From assembly GCA_002269645.1 (NCBI GenBank), contig NIVC01004605.1, positions 1 through 40,751 on the forward strand: a stretch of 40,751 bases of DNA, in the 5' to 3' direction. A program made the translations under genes and the position numbers. Source of the stretch: Macrostomum lignano. Lineage: Eukaryota. Below are positions 4,105 to 35,601 of the stretch, one piece after another. Every line of letters starts with the position of its first letter. Within the stretch, counting starts at the first letter, position 1. The notes beneath the pieces were generated by a model that was not told the DNA's origin, searched no databases, and saw only the letters and a list, made by a program, of their open reading frames with translations.

Positions 4105-5606
4105 CAGGTGGTCCAGGAAGGTCTCCCAGATTACAAACAGAGTTTTCTCTGCACTGGATTGATGAATTGGGCTGAAACTTGACCTGCTTAAACTTTATTC
4201 TGAATATGATTTTTTGTCTAAAAATCTTAGCAATTGCTAAAAAAATCACGAAGTTACAGCAGTTTTTCTAAAAAACACCGTTTTCACTTACTACTGATGA
4301 GCACATTTCATTCCAGACTTACACGACTTACACGCCAGTTGAAAGATTTAAAATGGCATCCTGGCTGGATGAATTGAAGAGTCCGCTGTTGTTCCAGCGG
4401 CGATGGCGTCGTGAGTTCAATTTGGCTGCCAAACAACGCCCTCCAGATGCTAAGACCATCAAAGATGCACTTAAGGTGGCCTGTGAGTTTTGTTTGGCTC
4501 GACGACCAATTTCTGGGCGTCCACGGACTGCTCGTTCTGCTGAGAATGTGGAACAAGTTGTTCAACACTTCAAGGAGCGACCACAACAGTCAGTACGTCG
4601 TGCGAGTCGGGAGCTGAAAGTTAGCCATCAGTCCATCCTTCGTGTGCTGGATAAGAGTGGCTTTCACCCCTATCGCATGCGCCGTCAACAGGCAATGAAT
4701 GAGGCCGGCAATGAGGCGCGAGTGCTATTCGCAACTGATATGCTGGAGATGTTTGACAGTGATCCTGAAATGTTAACCAACATCATTTTCTCTGATGAGG
4801 CTCATTTCTCCCTGCATGGCCACAATAACACCTGGAACTCGCGGTATTGGGCCATTGAAAACCCAGATTTCTCTATCCAGATGCCCCTTCACAGACCACG
4901 CGTCTCATGCTGGGCTGGAATTTGGTCCCACGGCATTGTTGGACCTTTCTTCTGTGAGGATGCGCAGGGTGCAAATGTTACGGTGAATTCTGAGCGGTAC
5001 GTGGAAATGCTGGATCCAAAGTTTCTGCCTGTGGTTCAGAATTACGAGGCATTTGTTGCTGGTGACTTGTGGCTGATGCAGGATGGTGCTCCAGCCCACA
5101 TCGTGCTTAATGTGCGTGAATGGATTCAGCACAACTTTGAGGAGCGCGAAATCGGACGCTATGAGACAATTCATTGGCTTGCACCCAGTCCTGATCTCAA
5201 CCCTAAGGACTTCTTTGTCTGGGGATGGGTGAAGGACAACGTCTACCGACAGCCAGTGGACAGCCTGGATGAGCTAAGGCACGGAAAACGCAGCTAATGC
5301 ATGATATGCCAGTGGATTTTGGTGTCAACAGCCTTAATAGCTTTAAGAAGCGCCTGCAGACTTGTATCGATAACAAAGGTCATCATGTGGAGCACTGACT
5401 AACAGTTGCATAGCAGATTGTGCTAAAACCCTACTGATTTAACAAAAAACTGCTGTAACTTCATGATTTTTTAGCAATTGCTAAGATTTTTAGACAAAAA
5501 ATATTTTCAGAATAAAGTTTAAGCATGTCAAGTTTCAGCCCAATCCATCAATCCAGTGCAGAGAAAACTCTGCTTCTAGTCCGGGAGACCTTTCTGGACC
5601 TCCCTG
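4105..5606 (+). mobile_element. Tc1/mariner superfamily DNA transposon, DD41D (rosa/Visitor) type, ~1.5 kb, ~165-bp TIRs, TA target-site duplication
   Basis: Left TIR 4105-~4268 (CAGGTGGTCCAGGAAGGTCTCCC...) is the reverse complement of right TIR ~5444-5606 (...GGGAGACCTTTCTGGACCTCCCTG); TA at 4103-4104 and 5607-5608; internal transposase ORF. Confidence 0.93.
4353..5398 (+). pseudogene. DD41D transposase with one frameshift near the C-terminus
   Basis: N-terminal HTH region, GRPRTAR linker, IIFSDEAHF, QDGAPAH and SPDLNPKDFFVWG with 41 residues between the 2nd and 3rd Asp. The ORF stops at 5297, but another frame continues ...FKKRLQTCIDNKGHHVEH* to 5398, the typical family C-terminus. Confidence 0.9.
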
Positions 5607-7387: not shown

Positions 7388-10300
7388 ATGAGCGAGGTCA
7401 CCGACGTGAAAAAAATTATACGCTTAAGACCGTCAAGTAGGTCTTTTTTGAATGATGAATGTAGTTTAAATTCCCATAGAAGAGTTTTTACCTGTCGAAC
7501 TTTTAGCTCATTCTTCTGAACTTTACGAAAGGAAGGTTAACACTACCAAACTGTTGTCTTTATTATTGCTTTCAGCTCTTCTTGAAAGTAGTTCTGCCGA
7601 TGATTTCAAATTTGAAGATGAACTATGTAAGTTTTACAATCAAGTTTTGCTAAAATTTTTCCTTGCAAACGAACTAAAATACGCGATGTACAGATTTTAC
7701 ACTGTTGAGACTGGTAGTTTCAAGTAGAATCCTGTAGCTATTTCTGCTTTGCTCAGAGCGGCGACCCTTACTACTAGAGTTATAGAACTGAACTAAGCTA
7801 CAATAGCAAAGAAAACATGCTGGTCTCTTGAATAGCCAACTATGAAAAACCCTATGCCAAATAATGATATTTAAGGTTCCCGAAGATTGGCTCTGTTCTT
7901 CGACGCTCGCAATGAGTCAGTGACAGATGAGTACGCCGACTTTCTAAAAGAGTGCAGTTTTAACGTAAAGAGGAGCCTGGAACAGCAGTATGAAAGCAAA
8001 CTGGGCTCGTGTCTATCCGACTCCGTGAACAATTCCGAGGTCCAGCAGCTAATTGTAGTCGTGATAGCTGGCAATGCTTTCATGAAGGACGTCCTAGATT
8101 TCATGACAATGGGTACATTTCCCAACTGCCAAAACAGATGTTTATTATTTTGTCGCGCTGGTGAAGAAAGCCTGGATGACACGAAACTTGCAAACGAATT
8201 TTCGAATGCGAATTTTAAATACAAGTGTACAACTATCGCTTACATCGTGGCTAAGGAAACTAAAAGCGTACAGGGCTTCTATAGAAGCTTCCTGGATGAC
8301 TGCAGGTGCAGTTGGGAGACTAAAAGTATATTTTCTATCCTGGAGACGGCATTGAAGCTACCACTCGCTTACGAGTCCCTTTCTCTGTATCATAGAGAAG
8401 GAAAGCTCGGTGGAGATTTCCTGCGCGACATATTCAAATTTATCAGGGAACCCAAGAGCAACCTTGATGAAGTTGATGCCTTACCAGCAGCATCAGAGCA
8501 GACTGCTCAAGACAAACCGACTGATTGGATGCGCGAGAATGCCTCAATAATCTATCCGAATCGGCGCAATCTGAAAAAGCCTCGAGCGTTGGTCATCATC
8601 AAATATGACCGAGGAGACTCTCTATACTCTGCTCTGCAAGTTGACCGCAGCAGAGTTATGCGTATGCTAAAAAATCTTGGCTACATTGTAACGGACGTGC
8701 AAACCCGCTCCAATGACGCCTTGAAAAGAAGGATCGAGCTTTTTTCAGAAGATACTGAACACGGTGACTCCTGCATCCTTGTCGTGCTGTCCCAGACGCA
8801 GCAGCAGCTGAGCAGCTCTACTGTCATGAATTTGTACAAAAGCTTGGCTATTGGCGAAAAGCTCGAGGCCAAGCCCCGACTCTTTATTCTGCACGAGTGG
8901 GATGTCACAACACTGCAGACAGACTCTGTTACTGATGGTTTCAGCAGCAATACTTATGAGATCATTGAAGATGCTGTGGACGGTTTGCAGGCCTATTTTC
9001 GCAATCATGATTCAACCATCAAGGTTCATCCACACAGCGGCATGGTGTTCGGTCGATCAGTTAGTAGCGATGTGACAAGAGCAGAGGGCAGCGCTTTTAT
9101 TCAGACACTGTGCGAAACTTTCAGACAGTATGGTCACACAGAGGACGTGGCCTCTATGATTACCATAATTAATGAGCACAAACGACTAGATGAATCTGTG
9201 CCCAAGTGGTTTATTCAGACTGGCAAGCTCTTTTATCTCATGGGAACAGACGGAATCCAGGGTAAGAGAACTTTTTTTAGCTCAATGCATGTATACTTTT
9301 CAATTCGAACTTTGGCAAAAGTGATTTCAGTTTTGGCAACACGATAAATTATGACTGTCACTGTTACTGTCAAAGTGACTTAAAATTCTTTGTGATCAAT
9401 ATCATTGTAGTTCTGTAGCTCAGACTGCTTGTGCCACCGCCAACATTTTTTGGTGTTAGTGTGCGACACTGGTGGTGTAAATTTTGACCTAACGGTTCCT
9501 TCTAGTTGCCTTTAAACAATACAATCTTGAATGACAAATCTGTGATTGACTGCTTTGGCCGTGTTTACATTTATGTCGAGGTACTTCACTAGTCGTCTTC
9601 AGTCTCTCCTTGTTGTTGTCAAAATTGGTCACTTTTGCCAAAGTCGAAATTGAAAAGTTACAACTATGCAGAAATCATTATTGCATAATCATTTGCACTA
9701 TTTTGCTTTTAGCTACCGGTCAGGAGGTTTCGCAACAAAGTCTACAGAAGAAATCTAAAGAGCCTAAACAAAGTCTAGAGAAGAAATCTAAAGAACCTGA
9801 AAGCGCCAGAATTGGTAAGTGGCATATTAAATTATCGAGAAACACCTCTTACGACGTAGAGATCCGATTCATGCGTTATAGCCATATAAAGCTATGCGCA
9901 ACATCTTTGCAAGACTACTCACTTCTAATTATATCTGTTCCGTTTTGCTGCGATGCCCAAACATTTTTATCCTATGAAGAATTATTTCATCTAAAAACCT
10001 TCTGATAAGTACATGTATTTCAGAGAGATACGCTTGAGTTATAAACATTATTAGATTCATGTATTAAAGAACAACTTTGCTTGCATGAGTCAATAAAACT
10101 CGCTAATCTCAGCAAAGCTCAGCCGTACTTGCACTTTTTAATTTCAGATCGAACAGGATTTGCGATGATTCTCACCGAAGGACAGTTTGATGGGGCCAGA
10201 AACTATCAGATGTTTCTGGAGTATGCAGCCTTCAAAGTGCTCTTCGATTACACGGATGGCAATTCGAGCTCAATCAAGACAGCCATCATGCTTCCAAAAG

Positions 10301-11607
10301 AAACTGAAGGAAATGTTGTCCTTTATCTAGTTGTACGCACACATCGCAACGACAACGTCTTGCAAGAAATAGTCGATGAACTTTCTAAACAGCAATCGTC
10401 TCAAAAGTGCAGCAGTAGCATTTTGCTTATCTTCTGCGAAGTGTCCGAGTCTGAAGAGAATTTCGCGAACACTCAGATGCCCGAGGAGCTACCCGAGAAG
10501 TTTAGCCTTGTCAGAGTTGCGGAGTCGGTGCGGCGTGATTGAATTTCTGGACTCCCTGCTGGAATCTCCCAGGAAGAACATCTCTCTCAATGGCAGCCTT
10601 GTGGTTGGTAGAGATTTTTCCTGCCACTCCTGCCATCACGGCATAATGCACTGCAAAGTCAATGACGAAAACCCAGGCTGGAGGAAGAGAATCACTTGGC
10701 TTGAAAACTTTTATATAGAAGAGAGTTCATCGCACCCAAATCTGTCTTCAATTGACGTTAGTGACGACACGCAGACGAGACCAGCAATAAGAGGTTCTCT
10801 CCGATTAGAGAGTTTCAGAAGCGAATGGAATGCACCTGGATTAGACACTCAAGAGTGCAAGGCTGTAGCCCTCATCGTTCAAACGTTGTCTTCCAGAAAA
10901 AGGAACTATCTACTCGGTTCGGAAGTCAGTACGACTGCCAGCGAATGGCTGACACTTTGCTCAGGCTTGGCTACTCAGTGAGCATCAGGTCGAATCTCAC
11001 CAAAGTAGAAATTGAAAGCGAATTAGACATGTTTTGCAGTGACGCACGACACGGCAGCTCAGTCGTAGTTGCTTTTATGTCTCACGGATGTCTCGGTGAA
11101 GTAGTTGGTTTCGACGGCGAATCAGCGAAGGAAAGTAAAATTCTAAAACGAATTTCCAAAGGAAACCGCACAAGTGAAAAGCAGCAATTGGTCATCTTCC
11201 AGAACTGTCTAGACCCTGGTCGATTGCCTAAATCAGAGCTGTCGTTTTTTCCTGGCATGATCGTCGCTCACTCGACTTCGCCGAATGAAAGCAGCTATCG
11301 AATGACAGACAGAGGCAGTCGGTTCATCCAGTGTCTGTGCACTGTTCTCGACCTGTTCGCCGACACGTGCGACATTGCGTCAATGGTTCCTATCGTTAAT
11401 TATGTGGTGCAAAACGCTACTTTTTATATGGGCATCAGCCAGCTGCCCTGGTGGTCTGTGCAGACAAGCAAGAAATTTTGGATTCGAGTCAATGAGCCTC
11501 CTCAAAGCAGTCGTGAATCGCGCCATCAAGCCAATTCAGCTAGGAACCAAACAACGAATGACTGCAGGGTTCAGGTGACGGAACTTCTTCAAAAAATGCG
11601 GTTGTAA
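7388..11607 (+). CDS. Multi-caspase-fold protein gene 1 (degenerate caspase-like + pseudo-caspase + degenerate caspase-like + caspase); last exon has two frameshifts (pseudogene or assembly error)
   Basis: Proposed exons 7388-7436 (ATG, MSEVTDVKKIIRLRPS), 7576-7626, 7876-9261, 9713-9814, 10148-11607; all introns GT-AG and phase 1, giving a continuous frame. Terminal domain has FMSHG (His 11083-11085) and IFQNC (Cys 11206-11208). The exon 3 caspase domain has VLSQT / ILHEW instead. Frameshifts at ~10530 and ~10881 inferred by comparison with gene 2. First exon less certain. Confidence 0.82.
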
Positions 11608-13373: not shown

Positions 13374-16300
13374 ATGGCAGAAACTACAGAAGCAAGTCGT
13401 GCTACTCGCAGTGCATTTGGTAAGATGCGCGCATAGGGGGGTTTGGGGGGGGCAGAGCTGCTCAGCGGTGAACGCGTCGGATCAATATTGGCCAAGAAGG
13501 GTTTGTCATGCGATTCAAACCCCGATGACCAGTACTCAACACACAGAGAGTGTACATGTTGGACGATTAGACAGTCAAGGGCCGCTGTACACCCTGTGGG
13601 AGCATGTGTGTATGAATGTGTATTGGCGCGCTTGCATTTGCTCAGGAGTCAGAAAAGTTTTTAGGGCCTTCGGCGAGGGGTGCCACGAATATCCTACTAA
13701 ATATTATAAAAAGTATCTAATTGTTTGTTTTTAAATATATTTGTTTATAGATTAATTTTTGTTCTAAATTGCAACAAAAACTTACAGGCATCATTCAAGA
13801 TGTACAGGCAGTATCGAAGCTTCCCAGCTGGCAGGGAACATTCGGTGAGCATTTCTCAAGGAAACTTTAAGTAGAATATTTTTAATTGTCCTTTGCACTT
13901 CAACTATAACATACAGTTTTGCAAAACTTTTACAATTGTAGCTCATCAAAGGCTACTGCTAGTATTCGCTGATAAGATCACAGCAGAAATGGACAGATAC
14001 ATTGAATTTATGAGCTCATGTTGCGGCTTTTACAATGAGAAGCTCGCCCTGAACAGTCACCTTGCCGAATCCGAGACCCTGTCTCGAGCACCAGTCAGGC
14101 AGATTGTCTGCCTAGTAATTTTCTCCGCTTCGCAGCCACAGCGCTACATGAAGGACTACCTAGATTTTCTGAACCAATTTGACGAATCCGTGGATCAGCT
14201 ACTGCTGTACTGCAACTTGTCCGAGACAGAGACCCAAATCGATCAGGATCTGCGAAATCAATTCTGCAGCAGTGCTTTTCCTTATCGAAAGTCTAGCATT
14301 GCTTACACTTTCGGAACTTCCTATGGAGTCGGACGATTTTTTGATAAATTTAAGAACGATTGCAACTTGAAATGGAATCGTACTGTTGGCCTTTGTGACG
14401 TCCTGCTGGAATCACTTAATATAGACCAGTCGTCTGAACTTTACATTAAAAAGCCTAGAAGCGAAAAGTGCTTCTTCCCACGCGAAATATTTTACCCTTG
14501 CAGCTCACAAGAACTGATCAAAATAGCCGGCATTGAGTCCTTCACCAACCGAGTTGACCCGGATACTCTGGCGTTATACGGTGATTTTATATATCTGAAC
14601 AGCCGCATACAAAAGCCGCAGGCCTTGATCGTTCTAAACATCAAACTAGAGAGCGGCAAGACAAACAAGTCAATGCACGCAGACTGGAGGCGCCTTCTTT
14701 GGCTGTTTGATAAGCTCCAGTTCGAGGTCAAAGATGTTCAAACAGACGCGTCAAGCTGCAGTCAGCTTGAAGAATGCGTGAAGACTTTTGCTGATTCTGA
14801 GTTGCACGGTGACTCCTGCTGCCTGGTTGTGCTCTCCGAAGGCTGGCTAGAAAGCAGCTGCATTGACAGCATCAGTAAGAGCATGGCCTTCGGAAAGCTT
14901 ATCAAGGGTAAGCCGAGGCTGATCATCATTCAGGAGTACCAACCGAAGTCCTCACAAGCATCGGATGCTGCGCCGAAGTCGCTCCCCCAATTTCTGCCTG
15001 ACGCAGTGGAAGCGATGCGATTGCAGTTCAGAAACGACAAGCCTGAGGTCAGAGTCCATCCGCTAAGCGGAACCGTATGGTGTCAGTCCGAAGCGTCGGA
15101 CACCGAAAGCGACAATGCGACACTGCTGATTGAAATCATCTGCGAGACTTTCATCAATCACTCAGCCATCGAGGATTTGGTTTCGATGATTTCAATCATC
15201 AACGAGAGACTGCAGGACGCCCCACCCACTTGGTGTGTGCAGACTGCCAAACTTTTCTATGTTGGAAATACTGAGTTCACAGGGAGCGGAAGCGCTAGTA
15301 AGTTTATTTATGTCTTTAAAAAATGAAGGAGATTGTTTATTTCAAGTTTACTGTCAAAATAAATTTTCAATTTCAGGCAAGGCTCAATCCGAAAATACCC
15401 CTGAAAATCCTGCACCTGCAACCGATCCGTTAGCGACTTTGCAGACATTGCAAGGCTTAGCAGCAGAGTCGGACAGGCTGCGTCCCATTCTCGATCAAAA
15501 CAGTAAGTATGAACTAAAAATTTGAGACAAAGATCGATTTGGAGGTCCCAAAATTTTTGAAGCTATAAACTTAATGAATTTCAGATCGCCCTGGAGTAGC
15601 ACTGATTCTCACTGAAGGCTTGTTCGACAAAGTCCGAGATTATCAAATGTTTCTGGATTTTGCCGGCTTTCAAGTAATCTCGGAACGAATCGACGGTATT
15701 GGCGCTTCTTTGAGAGAAATTGTGACTTCATCGGCCGCTCAAAGCCCTCTAGCAGTTGTGCTGATCGTCAAGAAGCACCAGGTCGGAGCCGGCGTAGATG
15801 ATTTAATTGCGTGCATGTCGGAGACTGCAACCAAGCACGGAAACAGTTCCCTACTCATCTACTTTGAGATACTAGGTGCTGATGAGCCGCCTTCTGAGAT
15901 TCGCTTACCGAATGAACTGCCAGAGAAGTTCAGCATAGTTTGCTACCAGGGCACTCGAGACCGAATCGATCTCTGCCTCGACGTATTTCTAAAAACACCG
16001 AGAAAGAAACTTAAAAACAGTCCAATTGTGGGTTATAACTTTGAGAAGCTACCTTACAAGAAAAAAGAGCCAAAAATGATGTACCGATCCAGCGATAAAA
16101 ATCCTGGCTGGAAGCTGGCGCTCAAATGGCCAGAGAGCCAAAATATCAGGGGTGACGACATCATGAAACAGGACCTATTCCGCACAGCCAGTATGCGAGA
16201 GAAATGGTTCCCAAAGAAACCAATTCCACAGAATGTCACTATGCAGAGCAGGGCTCTAATCGTTCAGAATGTTGTCTTCAAATCCGGCGAGATCAGATTT

Positions 16301-17014
16301 GGCACCCAGAACGACTGTCAGAGGCTGACGGACTGCCTTACAGGCCTGGGGTTTCGAGTGTCAATCAGAACGAACCTCACGGCAGCTGAAATCTTGCAAA
16401 CTGTGCAGCTCTTTGCTGGTGCCAACGACCACGGCCGCTCCTGCGCCTTGGCAATCATGTCCCACGGATATCTGGGAAAAATTTTGGGATGCGACGAAAG
16501 GACTGTGAAAGAAGCAGATATTCTTGATCAGCTGAGCAAAGGCAGTGGGCTTCAGGGTAGATCAAAGTTTGTTGTGTTTCAAGCGTGCAGGCCATTGGAA
16601 GAACAGCATTCCAGCAGCTCAGCAGAGCGATTGATTAGACCCTATCCCGACATGGTGATTGCTCACTGCACCTCCCCAGAGGAGTTCGGTTATCGAAACC
16701 GCTTCGAGGGCAGCTGGTTCGTGCAGAGCCTGTGCTCCGTGCTGAATGAATGCGGAGCCGATGCGGACATCCTATCAGTGATAACTGCGGTGAACTGCAT
16801 GGTCCTGACCTGCTTCAATCGGTCCGACTGTAAAGAGCAGCGGACTCAGCAGCCGTGGTGGCTGCTGCAAACGAGAGGCGCTTTTGTGCTCGGCAGCGGC
16901 ACACCAATGAAAGAGATCGGCGACACCAATCGTAGTGCAGCTGCACCTGCTGGGAGCCGAAAGTGTCGGGCAAGCGTTTGGAAAAAGTTGGAGGCATTCT
17001 TCGCGAGGTGGTGA
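13374..17014 (+). CDS. Multi-caspase-fold protein gene 2, intact, ~1004 aa (four caspase-fold units, only the C-terminal one with a catalytic dyad)
   Basis: Exons 13374-13419 (ATG, MAETTEASRATRSAF), 13788-13844, 13942-15297, 15377-15502, 15585-17014 sum to 3015 nt (1005 codons); all introns GT-AG, phase 1. Terminal domain has AIMSHG (His 16463-16465), VFQACR (Cys 16586-16588), IRFGTQND and YRNRFEGSWFV. Exon 3 domain has VVLSEG / IIQEY (no His, no Cys). Confidence 0.9.
13445..13650 (+). mobile_element. Diverged SINE family B-related copy in intron 1 of caspase gene 2
   Basis: Head with GCTCAGCGGT (A-box-like) and GATTCAAACCC (B-box-like); body ACACAG..AGTGTACATG..GCTGTACACCC..GCGCGCTTGC..TGCTCAGG matches the reverse complement of 11938-12130. 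Confidence 0.65.
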
Positions 17015-18434: not shown

Positions 18435-18520
18435 AGATAGATAGATATATAGATAGATAGATAGATAGATAGATATATAGATAGATAGATATATAGATAG
18501 ATAGATAGATAGATAGATAT

Positions 18521-18557
<37 letters not shown>

Positions 18558-18576
18558 CAGATAGATAGATAGATAG
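18435..18576. repeat. (GATA)n microsatellite, imperfect
   Basis: GATA units interrupted by GATATA and GACA variants. Confidence 0.95.
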
Positions 18577-18888
18577 TAGATAGCGAGAAAGAGCGAGCGA
18601 AGCGAGCTCTTTCGAGCTTGCTTGCCGCAGCCAATCAAGCTGAAAGCACGCACACAAGATCACCGGAAACGATTAAGGCAGCTGGAAAGCCAATGGGCGC
18701 GGTAAGCGCTTTTATCCAGAGGAACTACCTACTGGAACCAGCCATGCCGAACGAAAATCAGACTACTCAAGTAGTGCAAAAGAGTACGTGCAACTACCGA
18801 GAAATCTAATTTTCGTAACCGCTCCGGTGCAGGTCCTGGCTATAGATAGTAGATAGCGAGAAAGAGCGAGCGAAGCGAGTAATCGTAA

Positions 18889-19394
<506 letters not shown>

Positions 19395-19810: not shown

Positions 19811-21480
19811 CTATAAGTGATTCTCCGACACCTCTCCGGAGAGAGGAATTCGGCTTGACTTGGGCTGCTGTTGTTCCACCCGATCCGCCATCGCTTCTGC
19901 CGGCCCTTCAAATAGACTCTGCGTACTAACGAGGAAAAACTTCTTATGCGTCTGCACTGTCCAGCATGGCAGTTGTAGTGACAGAACTTCTCCATTCAGT
20001 TCAGGCTGTTTAAATCCGCGAACCATGGCGAAGTTGATCCTGGTGAGCATGGAGACCAGATCCTCTTTATGGGCGAACTCGTAAAAGGTTGCGCACAGGG
20101 CTAAAATGAAGCGACTGCCGTAACTACTTCGAAAAGCGAAGTCCCCAGGCGATGTCGAATGGGCCACGATCAGCCCGCTCTGCTCAGGCGGCGGCTCAGA
20201 TCCGCTGGCAGGATTGCCTTGGTGAATGCCCACCTGGATGGCCATCTCCGTCATCATCGCGCAGACTCTCTCCGAGTTCGCCGCCAGTTTTCCGGCGACG
20301 GCCTCGCTCAAATCGATCCGACAGGCTTGAATGAGAACCAGTCTGGGCTTGGCCCTGACACCGGCGCCTCTGGACATCAGTTGGAGTATTTCAAACTCTT
20401 CAACGATGCCCAATTTTTCCCCTCTTCTGTAGTCTGTGCCGCAGATAATGCCGAGGCTACCGTGCGACATGATAGCCAGGACGCAAGCGTCTCCATGGCT
20501 GTCATCATTGGCAAAGTTTCTCACCGCCTCCCGCATCTGCTCAGCTGTCAGGTTAACCATTTCTGTCACACTGAACTGCATAAGAGTCAGCACGTGACGC
20601 AGGTTCTTAAAATCCATGTAGCTCTCGGGTCGATTCGAGGTTGGAAGCACGAAACTTACGTTATGAATTATCAGAGCTTTTTTAGTAGCACGATTTCCAA
20701 TGTAGTAAACCAGATCGTCAATCGGATTGGGATCAGTCTTCAGTCTCTCGGCTGTTTCGGCGTCCAGCTGCTTCAGGTGCGATCCGTCGCCAATAATTCT
20801 AGCGAACTCCTCCCTGTCCTTCAGCATTTTCACCGGCAGCCGTGGCTGGATGAACTCGCCAGTCAAGCCATTCTGCGTCTTCAACCTGAACTTATCGAAA
20901 ACTTCGCTCTCGATTTCGTACTGAATCAACTCGCCGAGACCTCTGCTGTGCCATTTTTTCTTTTTTAGATCAGCGAGCAGCTGCAGGAAGGTCCTCACTT
21001 CATCTCGCATCTTCACGGTGATGCTCATGAGCACCATGTTGCGCAGATTCCTTCGACACTCGTCTGGCCTCATCAGCTTAACGCAGTCGGCTTTCTCTTC
21101 GGAGTACGTGTTGGAGATTCTGCAGAATATAAGCAGCTTCTGTGTTGAGTCATTTGCAGCCAAAAGCAGTTTGACAATTTCGTCAAGGTCGGCGGGTTCG
21201 TCAGACTCAAGCAGTACGACCACAACCAGCTGTTTGGCGTCCTTCGCTACGCCCTCGATTTCATTTTTTATGTCGTTAAAATCGGTCGATGGTACATAGT
21301 TGACAATGAATCCGCAGCGGTCCAAGAAGCGCTCATAGTCGCGAACTTCTAAGCAGCAGTTGACTTCCTGATTGTATGTCTGGCTGAATATAACAGCCCT
21401 GCATTGTCCACTGAATGAAGGCAGCTGGACGGGTTTCGGCGTTGGCGTTGTTTGCGGACTCGGTAGCAAAATTGGTTCGA
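19811..21480 (-). CDS. Caspase gene 3: N-terminal degenerate caspase-like domain + caspase domain (one large terminal exon; upstream exon(s) not identified)
   Basis: 552-codon ORF; splice acceptor TTTCAG ends at 21481 (phase 1). Motifs KKALIIHNVSF, NRPESYMD, CVLAIMSHG (His 20464-20462), KPRLVLIQACR (Cys 20323-20321), LIVAHSTSPG..FR..GSRFI, QLPCWTVQTHKKFF. Confidence 0.9.
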
Positions 21481-23347
21481 CTGAAATTTAAACACATTAA
21501 GAATTTTTTTTTCAAAACTACTGATGAACTTACATGAACATATTACTTATAGTGTATGTGCAACAGCTCAGTTTTTGGTCTGTGGACCGGCTACTTCAAA
21601 CTACATGTAGTACCATTATATAGCATATAGTAGCATATGTACGAGTATATTGCAATAGTTATGTGATCGCAGATACCATTTTATATCTGCTGTACGCTCG
21701 TATACTGCTACCTGTACCAGCATTAGAAGTGCTTTGTCAGTGCCCCAGCAGCCCACACTGCACCAGGCCGATACTGCGCGACCCAACGCCAAAGTAGGCA
21801 ATCTCTCTACCCGGAGCGTCCTAATTCCCGGAGACCACTCGCTATATAATACCAATAGTAACAGTGGGCTGAGGGCCTGGGGCTTTGAAATCTTCACTTA
21901 CGCTACAAATTCGTACCTTAATGTAAGTAAACCTCGACATACTGCTAAAAAACAAGGGGTATTGCAAAATTTTCGCAAAATGTGTCTACTGCAAACGACG
22001 GAAAATATCGAAATTCTGAGCTGAGAAATTCTAGCTAAAACTCCTTGCACATCTGCTCTATTTTAAATGATGAGACTGTAAAGCAAAGGACTGAGTTTGG
22101 TGCCACTGTCACTCAGGTAAGAGTCATTCGAATTTCGCTTAAAAGTATTTCAAATAGCTAGTCTAAAGATTCATTGACAACCTCAAAGATATTAAAAAAT
22201 TAATATCTGTTAATATAAATTTAGAACGGCTTCGACATAAATAAAAACGAAAGCGTACCTTCGCCTTCGGTTTCGTTTGGAATATTTGTGGGAGCAGTCG
22301 ATCGTTTAGGGGCATCGCAAGCCTCGGCCATGGTGGGTAGCATCGGATGCTATATAGCTTGTTTTGTGGCTTCTGCTTGAAAACACAGCAACAAGAATGC
22401 ATAGCTACAGTGTATAGCTGCTTTTTATAGAACTTACAGTTAGAGGCTACATGTATAGAGCCCATTTATGGTGCCAAACGTAAATTGTGACGTCTGTTTC
22501 TATAATTAAACAGTTCTGGAAAAGAGATTTGCTAGATAGATACGCTTTATATGGCCTAAGGGCCCAGATATTCTGCAGTTTAATACAGACTGCTTTGCAT
22601 GATATGGAAGATACGAATTCAAGAAATATACGAGCGTACGATGCAATTTACGCAACTGTAATACACTACCGCTACAGTTTGACCAGTGCAATTTGCATTC
22701 GTTGCGGATGTGTTAGTTAAAGCATTGATAAATAAATCCGAAGATATAGCTACACAAATTAACTTCAGGGGCACATTGTAGCTGTACCTGTTATTAGCCA
22801 TTCTAAAAGAAAAGAGTCGAGATACAGCTTCTGCATGATCCCTTTGGTTTAATTTGTTTAATCAAATTCCTTAGCCTAATTAAGAAGCTAACGTTATGGA
22901 GCTAATTTTTGGGTGCCTTAATACTTAATTTGTTAAAAATTTAACTCAATGAAAGTACAAGTTAAGGAATATTTCACTTAGATAGAAATATAACTGCTAA
23001 TTTGATAAATAAATTGCTAAGAGTTCTAGGACATATTGACAGAATCGTTATCTAGTTGATAACAATTTCTAGAAGCGAAAAATGTTTAAGTAGTTATTGT
23101 GACTTCAGCACCGATACATAAGCGAGTACATGTAAGGCTTTTTGTCCAAGTTTGATTCACAATTGACTCAAAGTTATCAAAGTGACGTACTTGAATGCAA
23201 ACTTTCACAATCGGATTTCTTTATTTGATAAAATTGTCTCTTAGCAAAATTCAAATCATAGCGTTTTCAATTTTTAGAACATAGTCAGCTTGTCCAGCTG
23301 TCTTACAGTTTTCATTCATTCTCTTTCGCATTTTTCATTCTCTTCTG

Positions 23348-23998
23348 TTTGAAGATTGGGGGCCGGTGATTTTGCAGATTGAGAGCCGGTGGTTTTGAAG
23401 ATTGAGAGCCGGTGTTTTTGCAGATTGAGAGCCGGTGGTTTTGAAGATTGAGAGCCGGTGTTTTTGCAGATTGAGAGCCGGTGGTTTTGGAGATCGGGGG
23501 CCGGTGATTTTGGAGATTGAGAGCCGGTGGTTTTGGAGATTGGGGGCCGGTGATTTTAGAGATTGGGGGCCGGTGGTTTTGGAGATTGGGGGCCGGTGGT
23601 TTTGGAGATTGGGGGCCGGTGGTTTTGGAGATTGGGGGCCGGTGGTTTTGGAGATTGGGGGCCGGTGATTTTGAAGATTGGGTGCCGGTGATTTTGGAGA
23701 TTGGGGGCCGGTGATTTTGGAGATTGGGGGCCGGTGGTTTTGGAGATTGGGGGCCGGTGGTTTTGGAGATTGGGGGCCGGTGGTTTTGGAGATTGGGGGC
23801 CGGTGATTTTGAAGATTGGGTGCCGGTGATTTTGGAGATTGGGGGCCGGTGGTTTTGGAGATTGGGGGCCGGTGATTTTGGAGATTGGGGGCCGGTGGTT
23901 TTCGAGATTGGGCGCTGGTGGTTTTGAGATTGGAGGCTGGTGGTTTTGGAGATTGGGGCTGGTGGTTTTGGAGATTGGGGCTGGTGGTTTTGGAGATT
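23348..23998. repeat. 23-bp G-rich minisatellite (TTTTGGAGATTGGGGGCCGGTGG), ~28 copies
   Basis: Regular 23-nt period with GGGGGCCGG / GAGAGCCGG variants grouped in blocks. Confidence 0.95.
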
Positions 23999-24380: not shown

Positions 24381-25211
24381 CTACGAACGAATGTAGAACT
24401 CTCCAGGTGTTTTGTACAGAGCCGGATGAGGAATCAGCGGATACCTCAGCAGGTGGCAGGCAAGTCGCAGCGCATTAAACAGCACAGCCTCGCACTGACC
24501 AGCTTTGCACCTGGAAGTGCACTCGAGGCTGCTCATGGCGTGGTGAGTCCAGTAGAGCGGGCTGGTGTAGTTCGTGGCTGTAGTAATTGCGATGTAGTTC
24601 CTGGGTGACTCAGCAAAGCTGATGCACTTTGGGCTGCCTGGAAAAAATTGTTTTAAAAAAGGAACTATACGAATAGTTTTGATTTTCGATCTGTTTAGAA
24701 AAATCGTAGCTAACTACATTGTACCTGAGTACGTCAAGGCGTAAATAGAGTTTCTATCGCGCCCGCCGCACACCTGAGAGCGATCCCCCAGGCAGGACAT
24801 GTTGCACTCTTCTTTGCTGGCTGCAAACCCGTACCTGCCGTACGTATTGGAACAAGAGCAACAGCAGGCGTGCTGTACGCCAAAGTAGCTAAAGCCTCCA
24901 AGAGAGCAGACTGACGCACACAACTTCAGAGTCATATTCCTGTCAAAAACCACAGCCTGCTGGTAAAACATGCTGTGTCCGCCAAAATAGTGCACACCGA
25001 ACAGCGCATTCAGGTCTCTGGCCCCGGGCTTGTCTGAGTCCACGAAGCATCCAATATAGCTGTTGGTTGCCGGCCTTGCCTCAGCAGTTTGGCAGGATGT
25101 CAGCACTAGCAGGATGAGCAGAGAAGCTGAAGGCAGCAAGGCAAGAAGACGAAATGAACATCTTCCATCTTGCTGCTGTTGGATTGGCACAACTGTTTTA
25201 GTAGCCATCAT
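24381..25211 (-). CDS. Secreted WSC-domain + PAN/Apple-like domain protein, paralog 1 (~247 aa)
   Basis: Exons 25211-24725 and 24637-24381 (phase-1 GT-AG intron; stop 24383-24381). Hydrophobic signal LLALLPSASLLILLVL; WSC pattern SYIGCF..RDL..MTLKLCASVC..YFGVQ..CSC..C..C.G...CGG; second exon LECTSRC..CEAVLF..CHLL. Confidence 0.88.
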
Positions 25212-25712
25212 TCTTCTTTCCACTGTTTAAATTTTTCATCCGTCTTAAGCGTTGGATTATATATTGAAATTTCCTGCCAATTTGTAGCAATTCACAAATG
25301 TCACTCAAACTGAAGCGTCTCGATCTACAGGTTAATTGGCAGGTTGTGAACAAGTTTTTGGAGAGGAACAAATTGCAATTAAAAATGTCCATCGTCCGAC
25401 CTTGGTTCAATATTTACCCAGCAACTGGTATTATTTTCAAAATAAGAATACAAAGATGCTACGCAGATCAAATGATTTTCGATTTTAGTTTTGTCAATCA
25501 ATTCGATATAATTGATTGCTATCTGTCCTACTGTAAGTAACCCTTTTAGAGCGGTAGCATTTGAAAGGAAAATGTGCCTTAAGCCTTGGTTATAACCTTG
25601 CGTTAAAATTGAAATGAACTATAGCAAATCGAATATGTCATACGTATTTGTTTTTAAATCAACTAATTAGTTGAAACATACAATTCCATACACTTCCTTT
25701 CTGATTAAAAAG

Positions 25713-27673: not shown

Positions 27674-28505
27674 TCACACTCGAACGTAGAACTCTCCGGT
27701 CGTGTTGTACAGATCCGGATAAGGAATCAGCGGATACCTCAACAGGTGACAGGCCCGTCGACGCTCATCAAACAGCACAGCCTCGCACTGGCCAGCTTTG
27801 CACCTGGCGGTGCAATCCAGGCTGCTCATCACGTGGTCAGTCCAGTAGAGCGGGTCGGTGTAGGATGTGGGTGCCCTAATGGCGATGTAGTTCCTTGGAG
27901 CCTTTTTAAAACCGATGCACTTAGGACTTTCTGAAAATGATTTTTTTTTCAGAATAATCAAGTTAACAATACTTCATAAGATTTTAATAAGGCTCTTAGA
28001 ATCGTATCATTGGCTGAGTAGAAATGAACCCACCTGGATATGTCAGGGCGTAAACTGAGTTCCTTCCAAAGCCGCCACATATTTGTGAGTGATTTCCTTT
28101 GCATGTCGTGTTGCACCGGCTTTCGCTAGCAGCCATTCCGTACCGGCCGTAGGAATTCGAACAGAAACAGTGGCAATAGTATTGCAAGCCAAAATACTTG
28201 AAGACTCCAAGTGAGCAGATTGCGCTGCACTTCTCGATGGTCATGCTTGAACAGTTGTAGGCCGTGCCATAGTATGCGCTCATGGAATGTCCTCCGCTAC
28301 CGAAGTACGAAACACGGAACAGGCCGTCGAGGTCTCTGGCTCCATAGGTTCCCGAATCAAGGTAGCATCCTAAATAGCTGAAATTGGCCGGGCGTCCCTC
28401 GGCAGCAGGCGGTGACGTCATCAGGACAGCAACGGCGGCAAGTGACAGAATAGAAGCGAAACACGCTGTACAGGAGTCTCTGATCAGCTTTTTAGTCGTC
28501 GGCAT
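27674..28505 (-). CDS. Secreted WSC-domain + PAN/Apple-like domain protein, paralog 2 (~242 aa)
   Basis: Exons 28505-28034 and 27930-27674 (phase-1 intron at the same position as paralog 1; second exon also 257 nt). Signal FASILSLAAVAVLM; SYLGCY..RDL..MTIEKCSAIC..YFGLQY.CHCFC..C..C.G...CGG. Confidence 0.88.
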
Positions 28506-29580
28506 AGCGATGCACGTTTTCAAACGTCAGCTTGGCAATGAGTTTGGACTTTACCTCAAGAAATTGGATTTTTTTGTCGCTTTTTTATGCTGCTGTACTC
28601 GGTGCAGTAGCTCTCTCCAGGAATCATTTTCCTGATTGGCTCAGATCCAAGGACTTCCAGACAATTCCTTTAACTGCTAGTGGTCGTCGCTTATACGTTA
28701 GAGCCTGCAGCTATAGGTGTCAAAGTCTGGCAAAGTCTTTGCCAAAAGCACAGCAAAGCCATGCATCTTTCTTTCAAAAAGAGACAAACTTGCGCTCTCT
28801 CTGATGTTTTCCGCATCGCATTTTCAGTGCGACTTTGAGAAACCAAAAAGTATGTATGAAAAAAATTGGCTCATTAGCTAATATTAGATATACTCAGTAG
28901 TATGTCTCTCAAGTAGCATAATTGACACAAAATCAAGCAACTTTTTTGTTTTTATTAAGCTTTGAAATTTGCTTTTGCAGCTTTTTATTAGATGACGGCA
29001 TAAGTAGCCATGAGAAAAAATTGAATTTGATAGCAATGATGAGGACGCACTTTTTTCCAAATCCCGCGCTAGCACACGGGCTCTAAATTTACTAGCCTAC
29101 TAACAGTGGGCGATGGGCATTTTTATCCTTTTTCTGTAAATTGTCATAGAATCTATACTAGATATAATGTCTGGCCATACTAGTAGTCATAATAACATAG
29201 GCATTGCTTTTTGGGTCATAAATCATCGCTTTCGAAGCTGGTCTGACAGCCACCTGCGCCTCACTCAGTGTTGAGACGGGCGCCAGATGGTCTGAGAGGA
29301 TGCGGGCGGTAGCTTTTTTCTCATCGTTTTGACAGGCCATCAAGATTTATGAGGTCAGAGCCTATTGTTCGGATTCACTCAAGCGTGTGACAGCTTTGAC
29401 AGCTATGCGTTTTACCCCTAAAAGTACTTTGGGATTAGCGATTAGCAATTCCTCTTCATTATCTTCACTTTCTATTTAATAAGAGCTTTCTAATGTATAT
29501 TTTTTCATTAATTTCTGTCAATCCTACGCGAAAAGTCATAAATCATTTTGTTGCGATTTTGAGTGATTTATGGCCGCACC

Positions 29581-32115: not shown

Positions 32116-35100
32116 TTAGCTATCGCGGTCTCTTTGTTGCATAATCACTTCGTGAGCCAGCTGCACGGCGATGAAGATATCTTTATCGCCTCCTTTGTCT
32201 GGGTGATTTTTCAACTGGGCGGCTCTGTAGGCTTCCTGCAGTTCTTCATCAGAGCAGTACTTGTTCACATTTAATAGCTGGTAAGCAGCTTCAGTAACAA
32301 TTTCTTCCAACTGAGCCAACTGCTTCATTTTCAGTGCCTCTGATTCTGCTTGGTCTTCTTCGAAAAACATGCTCCAAAATTTGTCGCCCAAGTAGTGGTC
32401 AGCAAGGACGGAAAAAATAACGATGCCAGCTTCTACGAGTAGCACACATGGGCCACCGATCACCATCAAAGCTAGAATCGTTCCTGCAACAATTTCAAAA
32501 AAACATTATTGCCAAATTTTAAATAGAATTTTAATCTAACACAAATTCCCAAAGGAAGCTCAAGAGTACATGTAGCGTCAAACTATAAGAGATATGCTCG
32601 ATAGTATACTCATGCCCCCAATAAGTTGACCCCGGGCTTGTACGATTTGCACCCTAAAATACTCCTTCACACTCAGATTAAATGAGACTGAGTCTACATG
32701 TCCACATGCCTGACGACTATAGAAAGCCAGACCTGCATGTATGAGTACGTGTCTGCGTACATAATTGTGTGCTCAGGGTGCAGCCTGCGGAATGAACATA
32801 ACTACTTATCGCATCACTGACTGTGGCTCGACTGCAGTCTCGCTAACTAGCCAAACGAGACTAGCCAAACACATCAGTTTTTAAAGCCAGACAGTCTCAC
32901 CTCCAGTAGTGGCTGCCACAGTGCCGCCGAGTCTGGCCAGTTGCTTGTTCCTCTCCGCTTTGCTCAGTAGACTGCGACGGTAAGCCATTAGAATTTGATA
33001 CGCAGAGTAGGTGGTTGTTCCGACAAGCATTGCTGGGCCCAAAAATCTTCCGAACCCGGTTAAGGCCTTGCCAATCGTGGTGTAGCCAACGCTTTTGCAG
33101 ATTTGTCCCAAAACATTAGGGGATGTGACAACAGCTCTGATGACGCCGCCTCTGACAGCGCCGAACCCCGCGCTTCTGGCTATCCTGATGGCGCACTCGG
33201 AGCTGCTGATCTCCCCCGCGAGGTACCGGCGGACTTCCTCGTCGCAGGAGATCACGCCGGACAAAACTGCATCTACGAAAGCGCCAATAGCAGCTTCTAG
33301 ACCAATCTTTTTGATAGCGAAGTCCAGACTCTTGGTTCGGACTGAAGGATTCCTTAATCTGGCTTCTAGCCAGCTCTTGGCTTTGTTTTCAAGATTGGCA
33401 ACCTCCTTTTCCAATTGATTTCGCCTGGCTTTTTGCTTTTCAAATTCATTGTTTTTTGCTTGAAGATGCCGCGACAGACCCTTTTCAAAAGCCTCCCGTC
33501 TCTGCTGCTTGGTAAAGTTACTCTTTAGCTTTTCGATATCACTTTGCAATTTGGAAATGTCTTTGTTGCACTGGGATAGTTTTTCCCTATCACTGTCTCT
33601 TAGGCTATTCATTGTTGACTCCAGTTCCTTGTCCTGAACAGACTTCTGATGTTCTGCTGAATATTCGTCTTGAGTCCTTAGTTTTTCGCGTTTATTCTTC
33701 AACTTTTCAAGACGCTCTTCAGCATTTCTTAGCTCCGTCGGCTTATCAATTAGTTCATATATTTTGTCGTCCAGCATCTTTTGGTATTCGGCAATGTTGC
33801 CTTCATCCGGAACAAAAACTTGCCGCGCGCTGCCATCATGTTTGACGATGGCTTCGTGCTCTTGCAGGGACTTGATTCGAGCCTCGAGTTCAGCAACTTC
33901 TTGAATACCTTTTCTGAGCCCGTCGACTTCTTTCTGCAGAGCGTCAATCTTTTTTATTTCGGCTAACTTCGGTTTTATCTCAGCAAACACTGAGCTCATG
34001 GTCTTGTCCTGAAGGAAATCCCGAAATGTTTCCCTGTTCTGATCGAGGAACGCCCGAATGTTATCAACAGTGTCGGTCTCGATTTCAAAGCCAATCCGGA
34101 TTCTTGATTCTGCAGCACCTTCAGTGGCATCTGCGATGCCTTTGGGGCCAATCACGGTCACATTGTCCAGCTGCAGAGCTTCTGGGTAACCTTTAGCTTG
34201 TCCAAACTCGCGCTTTGATAGATTGCGGTTCCACTTGGCCCGCCAGTTGTTGATCGTGTCCACAAGGTTTTCAGGTGTGTCCGTGTACTTGAACTGCACG
34301 GCAAAGTACTCGCCAGTGTGGGTGTTTTGAAAGACTGCGTCCGTGTACTCGGGCGTCTTCAATTCGACATGATTCTTTATGGTGATCTTCCCGTTCCCAT
34401 CGCCGGCGTGCAGCACTATGGGAGCGCCGCGCCTCTGCACCTCCGCCATCACCTTCGCTATTTGAAGCTCCTCGAAAGTGATGCCTAGAAGTTCATTCGG
34501 ATAATAGTTTGGCTTGAGACTTTCTAGACAATTTGGCTTCTTCTTTAGCATTTCCGTTGCTGCCTTGACACCGCCATTGCGAAGTTCTTTCACAAACTGC
34601 GCCCACGGTTCGTCTGTCTCAAGTGAGCGGGTTGCATTTCGAGCTGCGTTGGATTGATATCCGATGTTTTTAGCGGCCAATTGAGCACCCTCTTTTTCGG
34701 ACTTTGCCTGCGTGAAGTTTTTGTATGCTTTTTTAAAGTCCTCCACCTCCTGTAAGCTTATGTCTTTCAACGCTTGGTCTCTCGATTTAACCCTGCCCGG
34801 ATCGCACTGAATCCGCAGCTTAATTTTATGAGTAAATGTCGCATCGGCTCTCTTGTCACAGGCGCCGCTAAACACAAGATTTACAATTTTCGTCCAAGTT
34901 TTCAGCTTGACTTCCTTCGCAACCGAATACTCAATTGTTCCCATTGTGGTAGCGGTGAGTTTGCCTTTAGCAATGAACACTGGCAGTTTAAGCTCCCGAT
35001 CGGTGCCATTTAAACTGTATTTAGCCTTGTAGAGTTCCATGACCACCTCACAGCTGACAGACTCTGGTGAGCACAGATGGAGCTTCGCCGAGATCGGTTC

Positions 35101-35601
35101 AACAGACAAGCTGACTGTTGAGGGCAAACAGTTCAGTTCTGACGCCTTGCAATCGACAGTAACGGCGTCATTAGTTTGAATCAGTTTAGGAAGCAGTGAG
35201 TTCATCGACAGCCTGTCGGAGATCTCTTCGTCAAACTGGAGTCCAATCTCGGTGAAGTAGCCGCTTATCCAGTAGCGATCCAGCTCTGGAAAGTCGCACA
35301 GCCAGTGCCTCATTTTTCCTAGCACGTCAGAATTGTCGCCACCTTCAAGAACTTCGCAATCGGTATTTCGTAGGCCACTCGAAATCAAAGTAAATTTCTT
35401 TTTAGAGTTTTTATCTATCGCTTTCGTTAAAAGCTCACTCGCTTCTGCAGTTTGAAAGGCGAATTTATCTCTCAGTTCACCCAGTATTTGTTTATGCACC
35501 TTCTCAATGTCTCTTTCTGGCAGTCGGCAGGGGACCTCCATTGCTTTGGCCATTGCCTGCTTGTAGATGTCTAAGCCATTCTCCACCGTTGTTGAAGACA
35601 T
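32116..35601 (-). CDS. Large multidomain protein (~1022 aa): helical N-terminus, putative PD-(D/E)xK nuclease-fold domain, coiled coil, Gly-rich hydrophobic helices, C-terminal J-domain
   Basis: Exon 35601-32901 (donor GGAG|GTGAGA, phase 1) joins in frame to exon 32483-32116 (acceptor TTGCAG). J-domain AYQLLNV...LQEAYR..QLKNHPDKGGDKDIFIAVQLAHEVI (HPD 32205-32197). Acceptor TTTCAG lies 3 nt upstream of the ATG, so more 5' coding exons are possible. Confidence 0.85.

Follow-up and report, generated by a model that had tools for sequence, protein, structure and literature searches.

The window analysed here, a 40,751-nucleotide (nt) stretch of the genome of the free-living flatworm Macrostomum lignano (NCBI GenBank assembly GCA_002269645.1, contig NIVC01004605.1, positions 1 to 40,751), carries the caspase-family genes 1, 2 and 3. 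Gene 3 encodes, ahead of its catalytic domain, a segment of ~180 amino acids (aa) that we call the N-unit (20870..21406, minus strand; aa 22-200 of the open reading frame, ORF) and that is predicted to be a caspase-fold pseudo-enzyme domain. The explanation that we consider probable as a whole, although well short of certain, is that the N-unit is a complete dead caspase-fold domain, most likely an old internal duplication that has decayed, and that it pairs in cis with the live domain of its chain. The unit is present as an open frame, recurs within the family and always lies beside a caspase fold; its fold is predicted, and its origin by duplication and its regulatory role are what we infer. 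A first-pass annotation, made from the sequence alone, had suggested that the region in front of the catalytic domain follows the order of secondary-structure elements of a whole degenerate caspase and that the same unit recurs in genes 1 and 2. All of the peptides that it quoted are found in the translated ORF 19811..21469 (minus strand), and genes 1 and 2 do contain the four recurrences that it listed.

Predicted fold and caspase affinity of the N-unit

The N-unit alone (ORF aa 15-212, 198 residues) was modelled with AlphaFold2 (AF2) from a multiple sequence alignment of nine N-units and zero caspase domains, so that there is no leakage from the catalytic domain into the model. This model has a predicted local distance difference test score (pLDDT) of 73.6 and a predicted template modelling score (pTM) of 0.78. 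DSSP assigns its strands (b) and helices (a) in the order b1-a1-b2-a2-b3-a3-b4, followed by a long loop that includes a short helix, and finally b5-a4-a5-b6. The first part comprises b1 (RAVIF), a1 (EVRDYERFLDR), b2 (IVNYV), a2 (DIKNEIEGVA) and b3 (QLVVVVLLE), and the remainder a3 (LDEIVKLLL), b4 (QKLLIFCRI), b5 (NMVLMSIT), a4 (RTFLQLLADL), a5 (LGELIQYEI) and a short b6 at aa 197-200. Each of the segments named in the first-pass annotation sits on its assigned element in two independent AF2 runs. The full-length model reproduces the elements of the N-unit up to a5, in the same order as in its own C-terminal (C) domain. The model of the N-unit also has the caspase-specific a4-a5-b6 tail, and its long b4-b5 insert lies where caspases have the inter-subunit linker.

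A Foldseek search of PDB structures with the N-unit model, which might have returned no caspase fold or some other known domain, placed caspases at ranks 1-13 (E 4e-6 to 1.1e-3). Their query-normalised template modelling (TM) scores are 0.54-0.63, with 190-231 columns aligned for a query of 198 residues, and they include Sf-caspase-1 (Spodoptera), drICE and caspases -6, -11, -9, -1, -4, -3 and -8. The MALT1 paracaspase is the next match after these 13, and flavodoxin-like proteins (NQO1/2, flavodiiron, KefF) enter the list no higher than rank 17 (E of at least 4.6e-3, TM 0.28-0.45). No TIR structure is among the top 50 matches, nor did any other kind of signalling domain turn up, TIR gave no Pfam match, and no death-fold structure in the PDB was matched by the model. 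TIR, death-fold and kinase prodomain identities, which have neither Pfam nor Foldseek support, were dropped as candidates for the N-unit. When the full-length model is used as the query, Foldseek picks up the catalytic domain only. From the model of the unit alone, the N-unit is predicted to be a compact caspase-fold pseudo-enzyme.

Within the family, a-type N-units accompany inactive pseudo-caspase domains (psiC), whereas b-type N-units accompany active C domains. The strand that corresponds to that of the dyad His had been described as lacking this residue, and indeed gene 3 and the a-type units have none after b3 (LLESDEP, IAGNAF, IFSASQ). The three b-type N-units have a His 2-4 residues past b3 (VVRTH, IVKKH, VVRHRH; positions 10330-10350 in gene 1b and 15770-15790 in gene 2b). 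In seven of eight N-units b4 ends in a Cys (LLIFC or LLLYC; LLIFC116RI in gene 3), which stands outside a Gln-Ala context and lines up with the catalytic Cys given a two-residue gap. The b-type His and the b4 Cys are possible relics of the dyad, a reading that is suggestive only, because the sequences are few and mutually related.

Profile comparison provides a second line of evidence. Using hhalign, nine N-units aligned with ten caspase-fold domains of the family with a score of 31.0 (P 6e-4, 78 columns) and with the five active domains only with a score of 33.5 (P 2e-4, 105 columns). The N-to-C score matches the one obtained between the two N-unit subfamilies, which are certainly homologous (33.4); the controls scored lower (16-18 for reversed profiles; mean 14.2, standard deviation 3.2, for 200 block-shuffles). 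The correspondences with caspase elements that had been proposed from the letters are in register in these alignments, from a1 to b4 at default settings and, co-linearly, from b1 to b6 at low mact; for example, KLLIF--CRIS is paired with RLVLIQACRID. Profiles restricted to one subfamily (three sequences each) were too shallow when compared with caspase profiles (P 0.008-0.6).

The family itself contains a series of decay. Pfam detects the active C domains at E about 1e-34 and the gene-1 psiC at 4e-11, and leaves the gene-2 psiC undetected at E <= 1. The two psiC domains are clearly homologous to each other (Smith-Waterman score 347; gene 2a compared over positions 13875-15323, gene 1a over 7875-9344), and the gene-2 domain illustrates how fast dead caspase domains sink below detection. 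Since this series is visible within the family, an origin of the N-unit from a caspase is plausible. From the predicted structure and the profile alignments together, homology of the N-unit with caspases appears probable.

Several results weigh against this reading. A caspase match to the N-units was not found by Pfam (E <= 10) or by hmmsearch with profiles against PDB sequences. The Pfam scan of every N-unit at that threshold gave scattered noise only (Herpes_VP19C, Rad10, Ribonuc_red_sm), and the PDB search with five and with nine N-units gave SarA and cystalysin noise and then designed Rossmann 2x3 proteins, a result that confirms only the alternation of alpha and beta elements. Smith-Waterman z-scores between N-units and C domains are near zero (mostly -1 to 3) and uninformative, the hhalign probability is just 28-45%, and one of the 200 block-shuffles reached a score of at least 31. 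The fold is predicted from a shallow alignment (nine sequences), and the similarity to caspases is moderate (TM about 0.6, root-mean-square deviation 5-8 A). The sheet order 2-1-3-4-5-6 with an antiparallel b6 is only implied by the TM-scores to caspases, and b6 is missing from the full-length model, whose scores (pLDDT 56, pTM 0.48) leave the packing of the two domains unsupported. That the N-unit descends from a caspase, and did not reach this fold by another route, is suggested by the predicted structure and a weak profile signal.

Recurrence, gene structure and family architecture

The five N-units align with the gene 3 unit at 16-30% identity, and across paralogues so diverged the hydrophobic pattern is conserved and the unit is kept as a foldable ORF. 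A profile of five units, used in an exhaustive HMMER search of 1.84 billion representative proteins, matched seven clusters only (E 1e-115 to 4.5e-06), by which the recurrence of the unit is not a matter of chance. All seven clusters are from M. lignano, and in each the unit immediately precedes a caspase-fold domain. The Pfam caspase domain is detected in six of them, the other (P0006) being a fragmentary model that bears the gene-2 pseudo-caspase sequence. Because every cluster is both from M. lignano and caspase-adjacent, we regard the N-unit as a genuine lineage-restricted domain tied to caspase folds. No coral or mollusc protein was matched by the profile among the 1.84 billion representatives. 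In a word-indexed protein search the N-unit alone returned nothing and the five-unit alignment returned one partial protein; this search missed the 97%-identical proteins P0001 and P0002 described below, so its negatives carry no weight and are superseded by the exhaustive one.

The gene 3 ORF (19811..21469, minus strand, 552 aa) is 97% identical to P0001 and P0002, two annotated M. lignano proteins (BOX15_Mlig030447g1 / Mlig012807g1) whose N-termini map by tblastn onto an upstream exon. As read from the sequence, this exon 1 (22259..22343, minus strand) starts with ATG at 22343, comprises 28 codons and one further nt (85 nt) and ends at a GT donor (22258-22257). Exon 2 (19811..21480, minus strand) follows an AG acceptor (21482-21481, TTTCAG) and closes with the stop codon at 19811-19813. 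Joining the two exons across a phase-1 intron gives a complete coding sequence of 584 aa, and position 21480, which the first-pass annotation had given as the end of the feature, is by this reading of the splice sites the true start of exon 2. The gene 3 ORF is kept in three ~97%-identical genomic copies. In all three comparisons among them the ratio of non-synonymous to synonymous substitution rates (dN/dS) of the N-unit is below 1 (0.18-0.59), values based on just 2-11 substitutions, which again limits what they say for our reading. The N-unit has changed more quickly than the catalytic domain: the window copy differs from that at L002 by 11 vs 0 non-synonymous changes. A plus-strand ORF antisense to gene 3 (20159-20968) has no family match and was taken as spurious.

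The catalytic caspase domain of gene 3 (19928..20680, minus strand; ORF aa 264-514) was delimited by Pfam, phmmer and Foldseek. The sole Pfam-recognised part of the ORF is aa 263-511, which matches PF00656 (Peptidase_C14) with E=5e-34 and 118 bits against a cut-off of 21.4. In phmmer alignments, His336 in AIMSHG (20450-20467, minus strand) is aligned with ILSHG of CED-3, and Cys383 in QACRI (20315-20329, minus strand) falls in LIQACRI, which is aligned with FVQACRG; the residue following QACR is Ile, where CED-3 has Gly. The Arg/Gln/Arg of the S1 pocket (equivalents of Arg179, Gln283 and Arg341) are likewise aligned to CED-3 and caspase-3, with SNRPES against CED-3 PTRNGT, the Gln within QAC, and FAFRSS.YGSRFI against VSWRNSARGSWFI. 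The model of this domain matches solved caspases with a Foldseek E about 1e-12. By these sequence features it is a canonical caspase of family C14A, with predicted Asp specificity. The inter-domain linker (20681..20869, minus strand; ORF aa 201-263) is predicted, at low confidence, to be disordered or helical, and the full-length model has a pLDDT <50 across aa 187-260. No DED, CARD or Death domain was matched by Pfam at E <= 1 in six proteins of the window.

Genes 1 and 2, both on the plus strand, are single spliced genes with the order N-psiC-linker-N-C. In gene 1, the first N-unit (a-type, 7881..8453) is identical to the annotated partial protein P0003 and is followed by the psiC domain (8580..9242; PF00656 E=4e-11; exon end 9261), in which SQTQ replaces SHG and HEWD replaces QACxG. 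A linker exon follows (9713..9814; 102 nt, phase 1 at both ends, splice sites read) and then the second-module exon (10148..11607), which encodes a b-type N-unit (10150-10533, continuing from there in a different frame) followed by a caspase domain (10882-11490) carrying both His (FMSHG) and Cys (QNC). This exon is broken by two frame shifts, at about 10515-10535 and at 10880-10885. The first, from frame 0 to frame 1, lies near GTTGCGGAGTCGG, and frame 0 therefore meets a stop at 10540; the second leads back to frame 0 at CAAAC, where CAAAAC is expected, one base being missing in an A-run. The other annotated copy (P0005) reads through the site of the first shift, and the shifts are either an assembly indel error or the mark of a decaying allele.

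In gene 2, the first N-unit (a-type, 13944..14498) precedes a Pfam-undetected psiC domain (14616..15266; exon end 15297) with SEGW and QEYQ at the two sites and thus neither His nor Cys. The linker exon (15377..15502; 126 nt, phase 1 at both ends) leads to the second-module exon (15585..17014), where a b-type N-unit (15587-16105) precedes the catalytic caspase domain (16247-16894; AIMSHG, FQACRP; PF00656 E=7e-35). The N-psiC exons end at a phase-1 GTAAG(T/A) donor and the N-C exon opens at a phase-1 TTTCAG (or TTTTAG) acceptor. The annotated 1017-aa M. lignano protein P0004 has the exact junctions of gene 2 (...GSGSASKAQSEN...ILDQNNRPGVALIL...).

A pseudo-caspase followed by a caspase had been proposed as the basic module, with gene 3 as the one-module form and genes 1 and 2 as two-module forms. 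Gene 3 is indeed N-C, and matched splice sites together with P0004 uphold the two modules of genes 1 and 2. The proposal needs qualification: the caspase of the first module itself lacks His and Cys, and the order is not strictly N followed by C in every member. Because the first caspase-like domain lacks both residues, the chains of genes 1 and 2 would read dead-dead-dead-active (psi-psi-psi-active). The exception to the N-C order is found in a second family cluster on another M. lignano contig (L003, 1-8534), where P0007 (psiC-N-C) lies directly upstream of P0008 (N-psiC-C); the latter is truly without a second N-unit, since its psiC-to-C intron is only ~300 nt. The gene 3 N-unit is closer to the a-type, while its C domain is closer to the C domains partnered by b-type units. 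In all complete chains of the family that were seen, one or more dead caspase folds precede the active C domain. If the predicted fold is correct, the family unit would be a dead caspase fold and then a caspase fold in one chain.

The linker between N-unit and psiC in gene 1 contains LDEVD-A (8463-8477, plus strand), a textbook caspase-3/7 cleavage motif. Other Asp motifs in linkers are VDPD-T (gene 2a) and PIDD-L (gene 3). From their sequence, these are possible autoprocessing sites.

Other features of the window lie outside the caspase genes. Long perfect (AGAT)n and (ATAG)126 microsatellites (18435-18583 and 18889-19394) separate the convergent genes 2 and 3, and these tetranucleotide repeats account for spurious 'SIYLSIYL' ORFs. 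A 23-nt tandem repeat on the minus strand (23348-23998; 28 copies, 92% match) gives rise to Pro-rich 'ORFs' that overlap one another (PPISKTTGPQSPK...); as its period is not divisible by three, it is probably a satellite and not coding. Two paralogous small ORFs (24714-25223 and 27996-28523, minus strand) combine a hydrophobic N-terminal stretch with a carbohydrate-binding WSC domain (Pfam E 5e-13 and 5e-15). Close to gene 1, on its upstream side, a 314-aa ORF (4353-5297, plus strand) has a weak match to HTH_Tnp_Tc3_2 (26 bits vs a cut-off of 31.5) and is, on this match, probably the remnant of a Tc1/mariner-type transposase. Finally, an ORF with a DnaJ (J) domain (E 4e-10) lies downstream of, and on the same strand as, a 906-aa Lys/Glu-repeat ORF that is probably coiled-coil and has no Pfam match. 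The two occupy positions 32116-32469 and 32881-35601 (minus strand) and may be exons of one gene.

Explanations for the N-unit

In the explanation that we favour, an old internal duplication of the caspase domain would have given rise to the N-unit, the sequence of which would then have decayed past recognition. The N-unit would pack on the live domain of its own chain through the b6/a5 edge that is used in caspase dimerisation. The resulting built-in pseudo-heterodimer would set the activity of the catalytic domain, either by restraint or by pre-organisation, and no CARD or DED recruitment platform would be needed. Regulation in cis is suggested by analogy with cFLIP(L)/procaspase-8 and with coral caspase-X, and in the flatworm proteins the N-unit is joined to the canonical caspase by a low-confidence linker of 45-70 residues.

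Flavodoxin-like and caspase folds have in common five parallel strands in the order 2-1-3-4-5, which leaves room for a different origin. The N-unit could be a generic three-layer alpha/beta domain (flavodoxin- or Rossmann-like) that arose independently and was taken up as a prodomain specific to this lineage, its likeness to caspases being analogy or idealisation by AF2 working from few sequences. The missing sequence-level caspase signal, the restriction of the PDB sequence matches to designed Rossmann 2x3 proteins and the occurrence of flavodoxin-like proteins in the Foldseek list from rank 17 are all in keeping with this. However, the caspase E-values are 2-3 orders better and the TM-scores are 0.54-0.63 vs 0.28-0.45, the model has the a4-a5-b6 tail and the long b4-b5 insert, and the hhalign correspondence is in register, co-linear and better than 199/200 shuffles, in a family that displays its own decay series. 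We consider a generic fold unlikely. Doubtful as well, although to be taken seriously, is the possibility that the N-unit is a caspase fold that acts in trans, as a cFLIP-like decoy or adaptor for other family members or as a driver of oligomerisation among the chains with many domains. Every solved caspase dimer, like cFLIP/caspase-8, has caspase folds paired in trans through b6, the paralogues are co-located in clusters (in this window and at L003), chains with four folds exceed what one intramolecular pair satisfies, and AF2 gives no confident packing of N on C. Set against these points are the strict cis adjacency of dead and live folds in all family members, flexible linkers whose length (45-70 residues) suits a cis pair, and the coral precedent, which was modelled in cis.

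That the N-unit is a long removable prodomain, or a functionless and decaying relic that is cleaved off or ignored, seems to us very unlikely. The faster change of the N-unit relative to the catalytic domain would fit such a fate, as would the Asp motifs in N-to-caspase linkers (LDEVD in gene 1), but the foldable ORF and its hydrophobic pattern are kept, the unit exists as two co-evolving subtypes, dN/dS is <1 in all three comparisons, and the predicted structure is confident and compact. A more far-reaching version of the cis explanation would see a self-contained Macrostomum activation system, independent of that in corals, in which up to four folds per chain pair in cis as built-in pseudo-heterodimers, death-fold platforms are unneeded, and the dead folds are switches within the chain that are freed by cleavage at linker Asp motifs (LDEVD). 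Such a system might replace the lost FADD/DED machinery, the extrinsic pathway components reported as lost in flatworms in a 2024 survey of lophotrochozoan caspases (PMC11463336). In this extended form, the proposal appears rather improbable.

Should the N-unit be a decayed caspase, the fusion of a pseudo-caspase with a caspase would have arisen again in a flatworm and decayed until only structure prediction reveals it, and caspase surveys based on sequence domains would undercount pseudo-enzyme partners. Invertebrate caspases described as "prodomain-less" or as having a "long unknown prodomain" may conceal an arrangement of this kind. M. lignano is a transgenic regeneration model tractable by RNA interference, making the role of a cis pseudo-caspase directly testable. 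The interest for caspase evolution and for pseudo-enzyme biology is real, and no new principle is involved.

Comparison with known systems

The long form of cFLIP, cFLIP(L), is a pseudo-caspase paralogue of caspase-8 that lacks the catalytic residues, pairs with procaspase-8 and controls its activity. It forms a polypeptide of its own, carries two DEDs and is recruited at the death-inducing signalling complex (DISC). In contrast, the dead and live folds of the flatworm proteins are fused in one chain, in which no death-fold domain was detected. Separase and Csx29/TPR-CHAT, also members of clan CD, have a dead caspase-like domain beside an active one in the same chain, where it has a supporting or regulating role. 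They are distant families of this clan, outside C14A, and have other partners and modes of regulation (securin for separase; Cas7-11/RNA for Csx29).

Among lophotrochozoans, the same 2024 survey names a kinase-prodomain caspase as the only oddity of M. lignano and reports no further unexpected prodomain from flatworms (PMC11463336). As this is the only one reported there, the N-unit appears to be previously unrecognised. In the mussel Mytilus coruscus, caspases have undergone lineage-specific tandem expansions, with some members having two CASc domains and many having degenerate active sites (PMC10967218). The flatworm family is similar in its tandemly duplicated caspase genes and in chains with two caspase domains. 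It differs in that both domains of the mussel proteins are detected by sequence; a cryptic N-unit was not described there, and the N-unit profile matched no mollusc protein.

The closest likeness is to caspase-X of corals (AmCaspase Xa-Xd of Acropora millepora, with relatives in A. digitifera), in which an inactive CASc* domain is combined with an active CASc domain (PMC4715348). The two were modelled as a cis b6-b6 pair, cytotoxicity rose on deletion of the N-terminal part, and restraint of the active domain by the inactive one was proposed, as in cFLIP/procaspase-8 (PMC4715348). In both systems a single chain presents a caspase fold that lacks the His and then a canonical caspase, without CARD or DED, and a predicted coral member with four caspase domains (PMC4715348) parallels genes 1 and 2. 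The inactive coral domain is, however, recognisable as CASc from its sequence and is about 250 aa long, whereas neither Pfam nor PDB hidden Markov models recognise the N-unit, which has about 180 aa. Most N-units moreover retain a Cys at the end of b4, and the flatworm family combines dead domains of two grades, N and psiC, within a single chain. The likeness is architectural, and there is no evidence of orthology, given that the N-unit profile matches no coral protein. The arrangement in Macrostomum is, judging from these sequence comparisons, probably of independent origin and convergent with that of corals.

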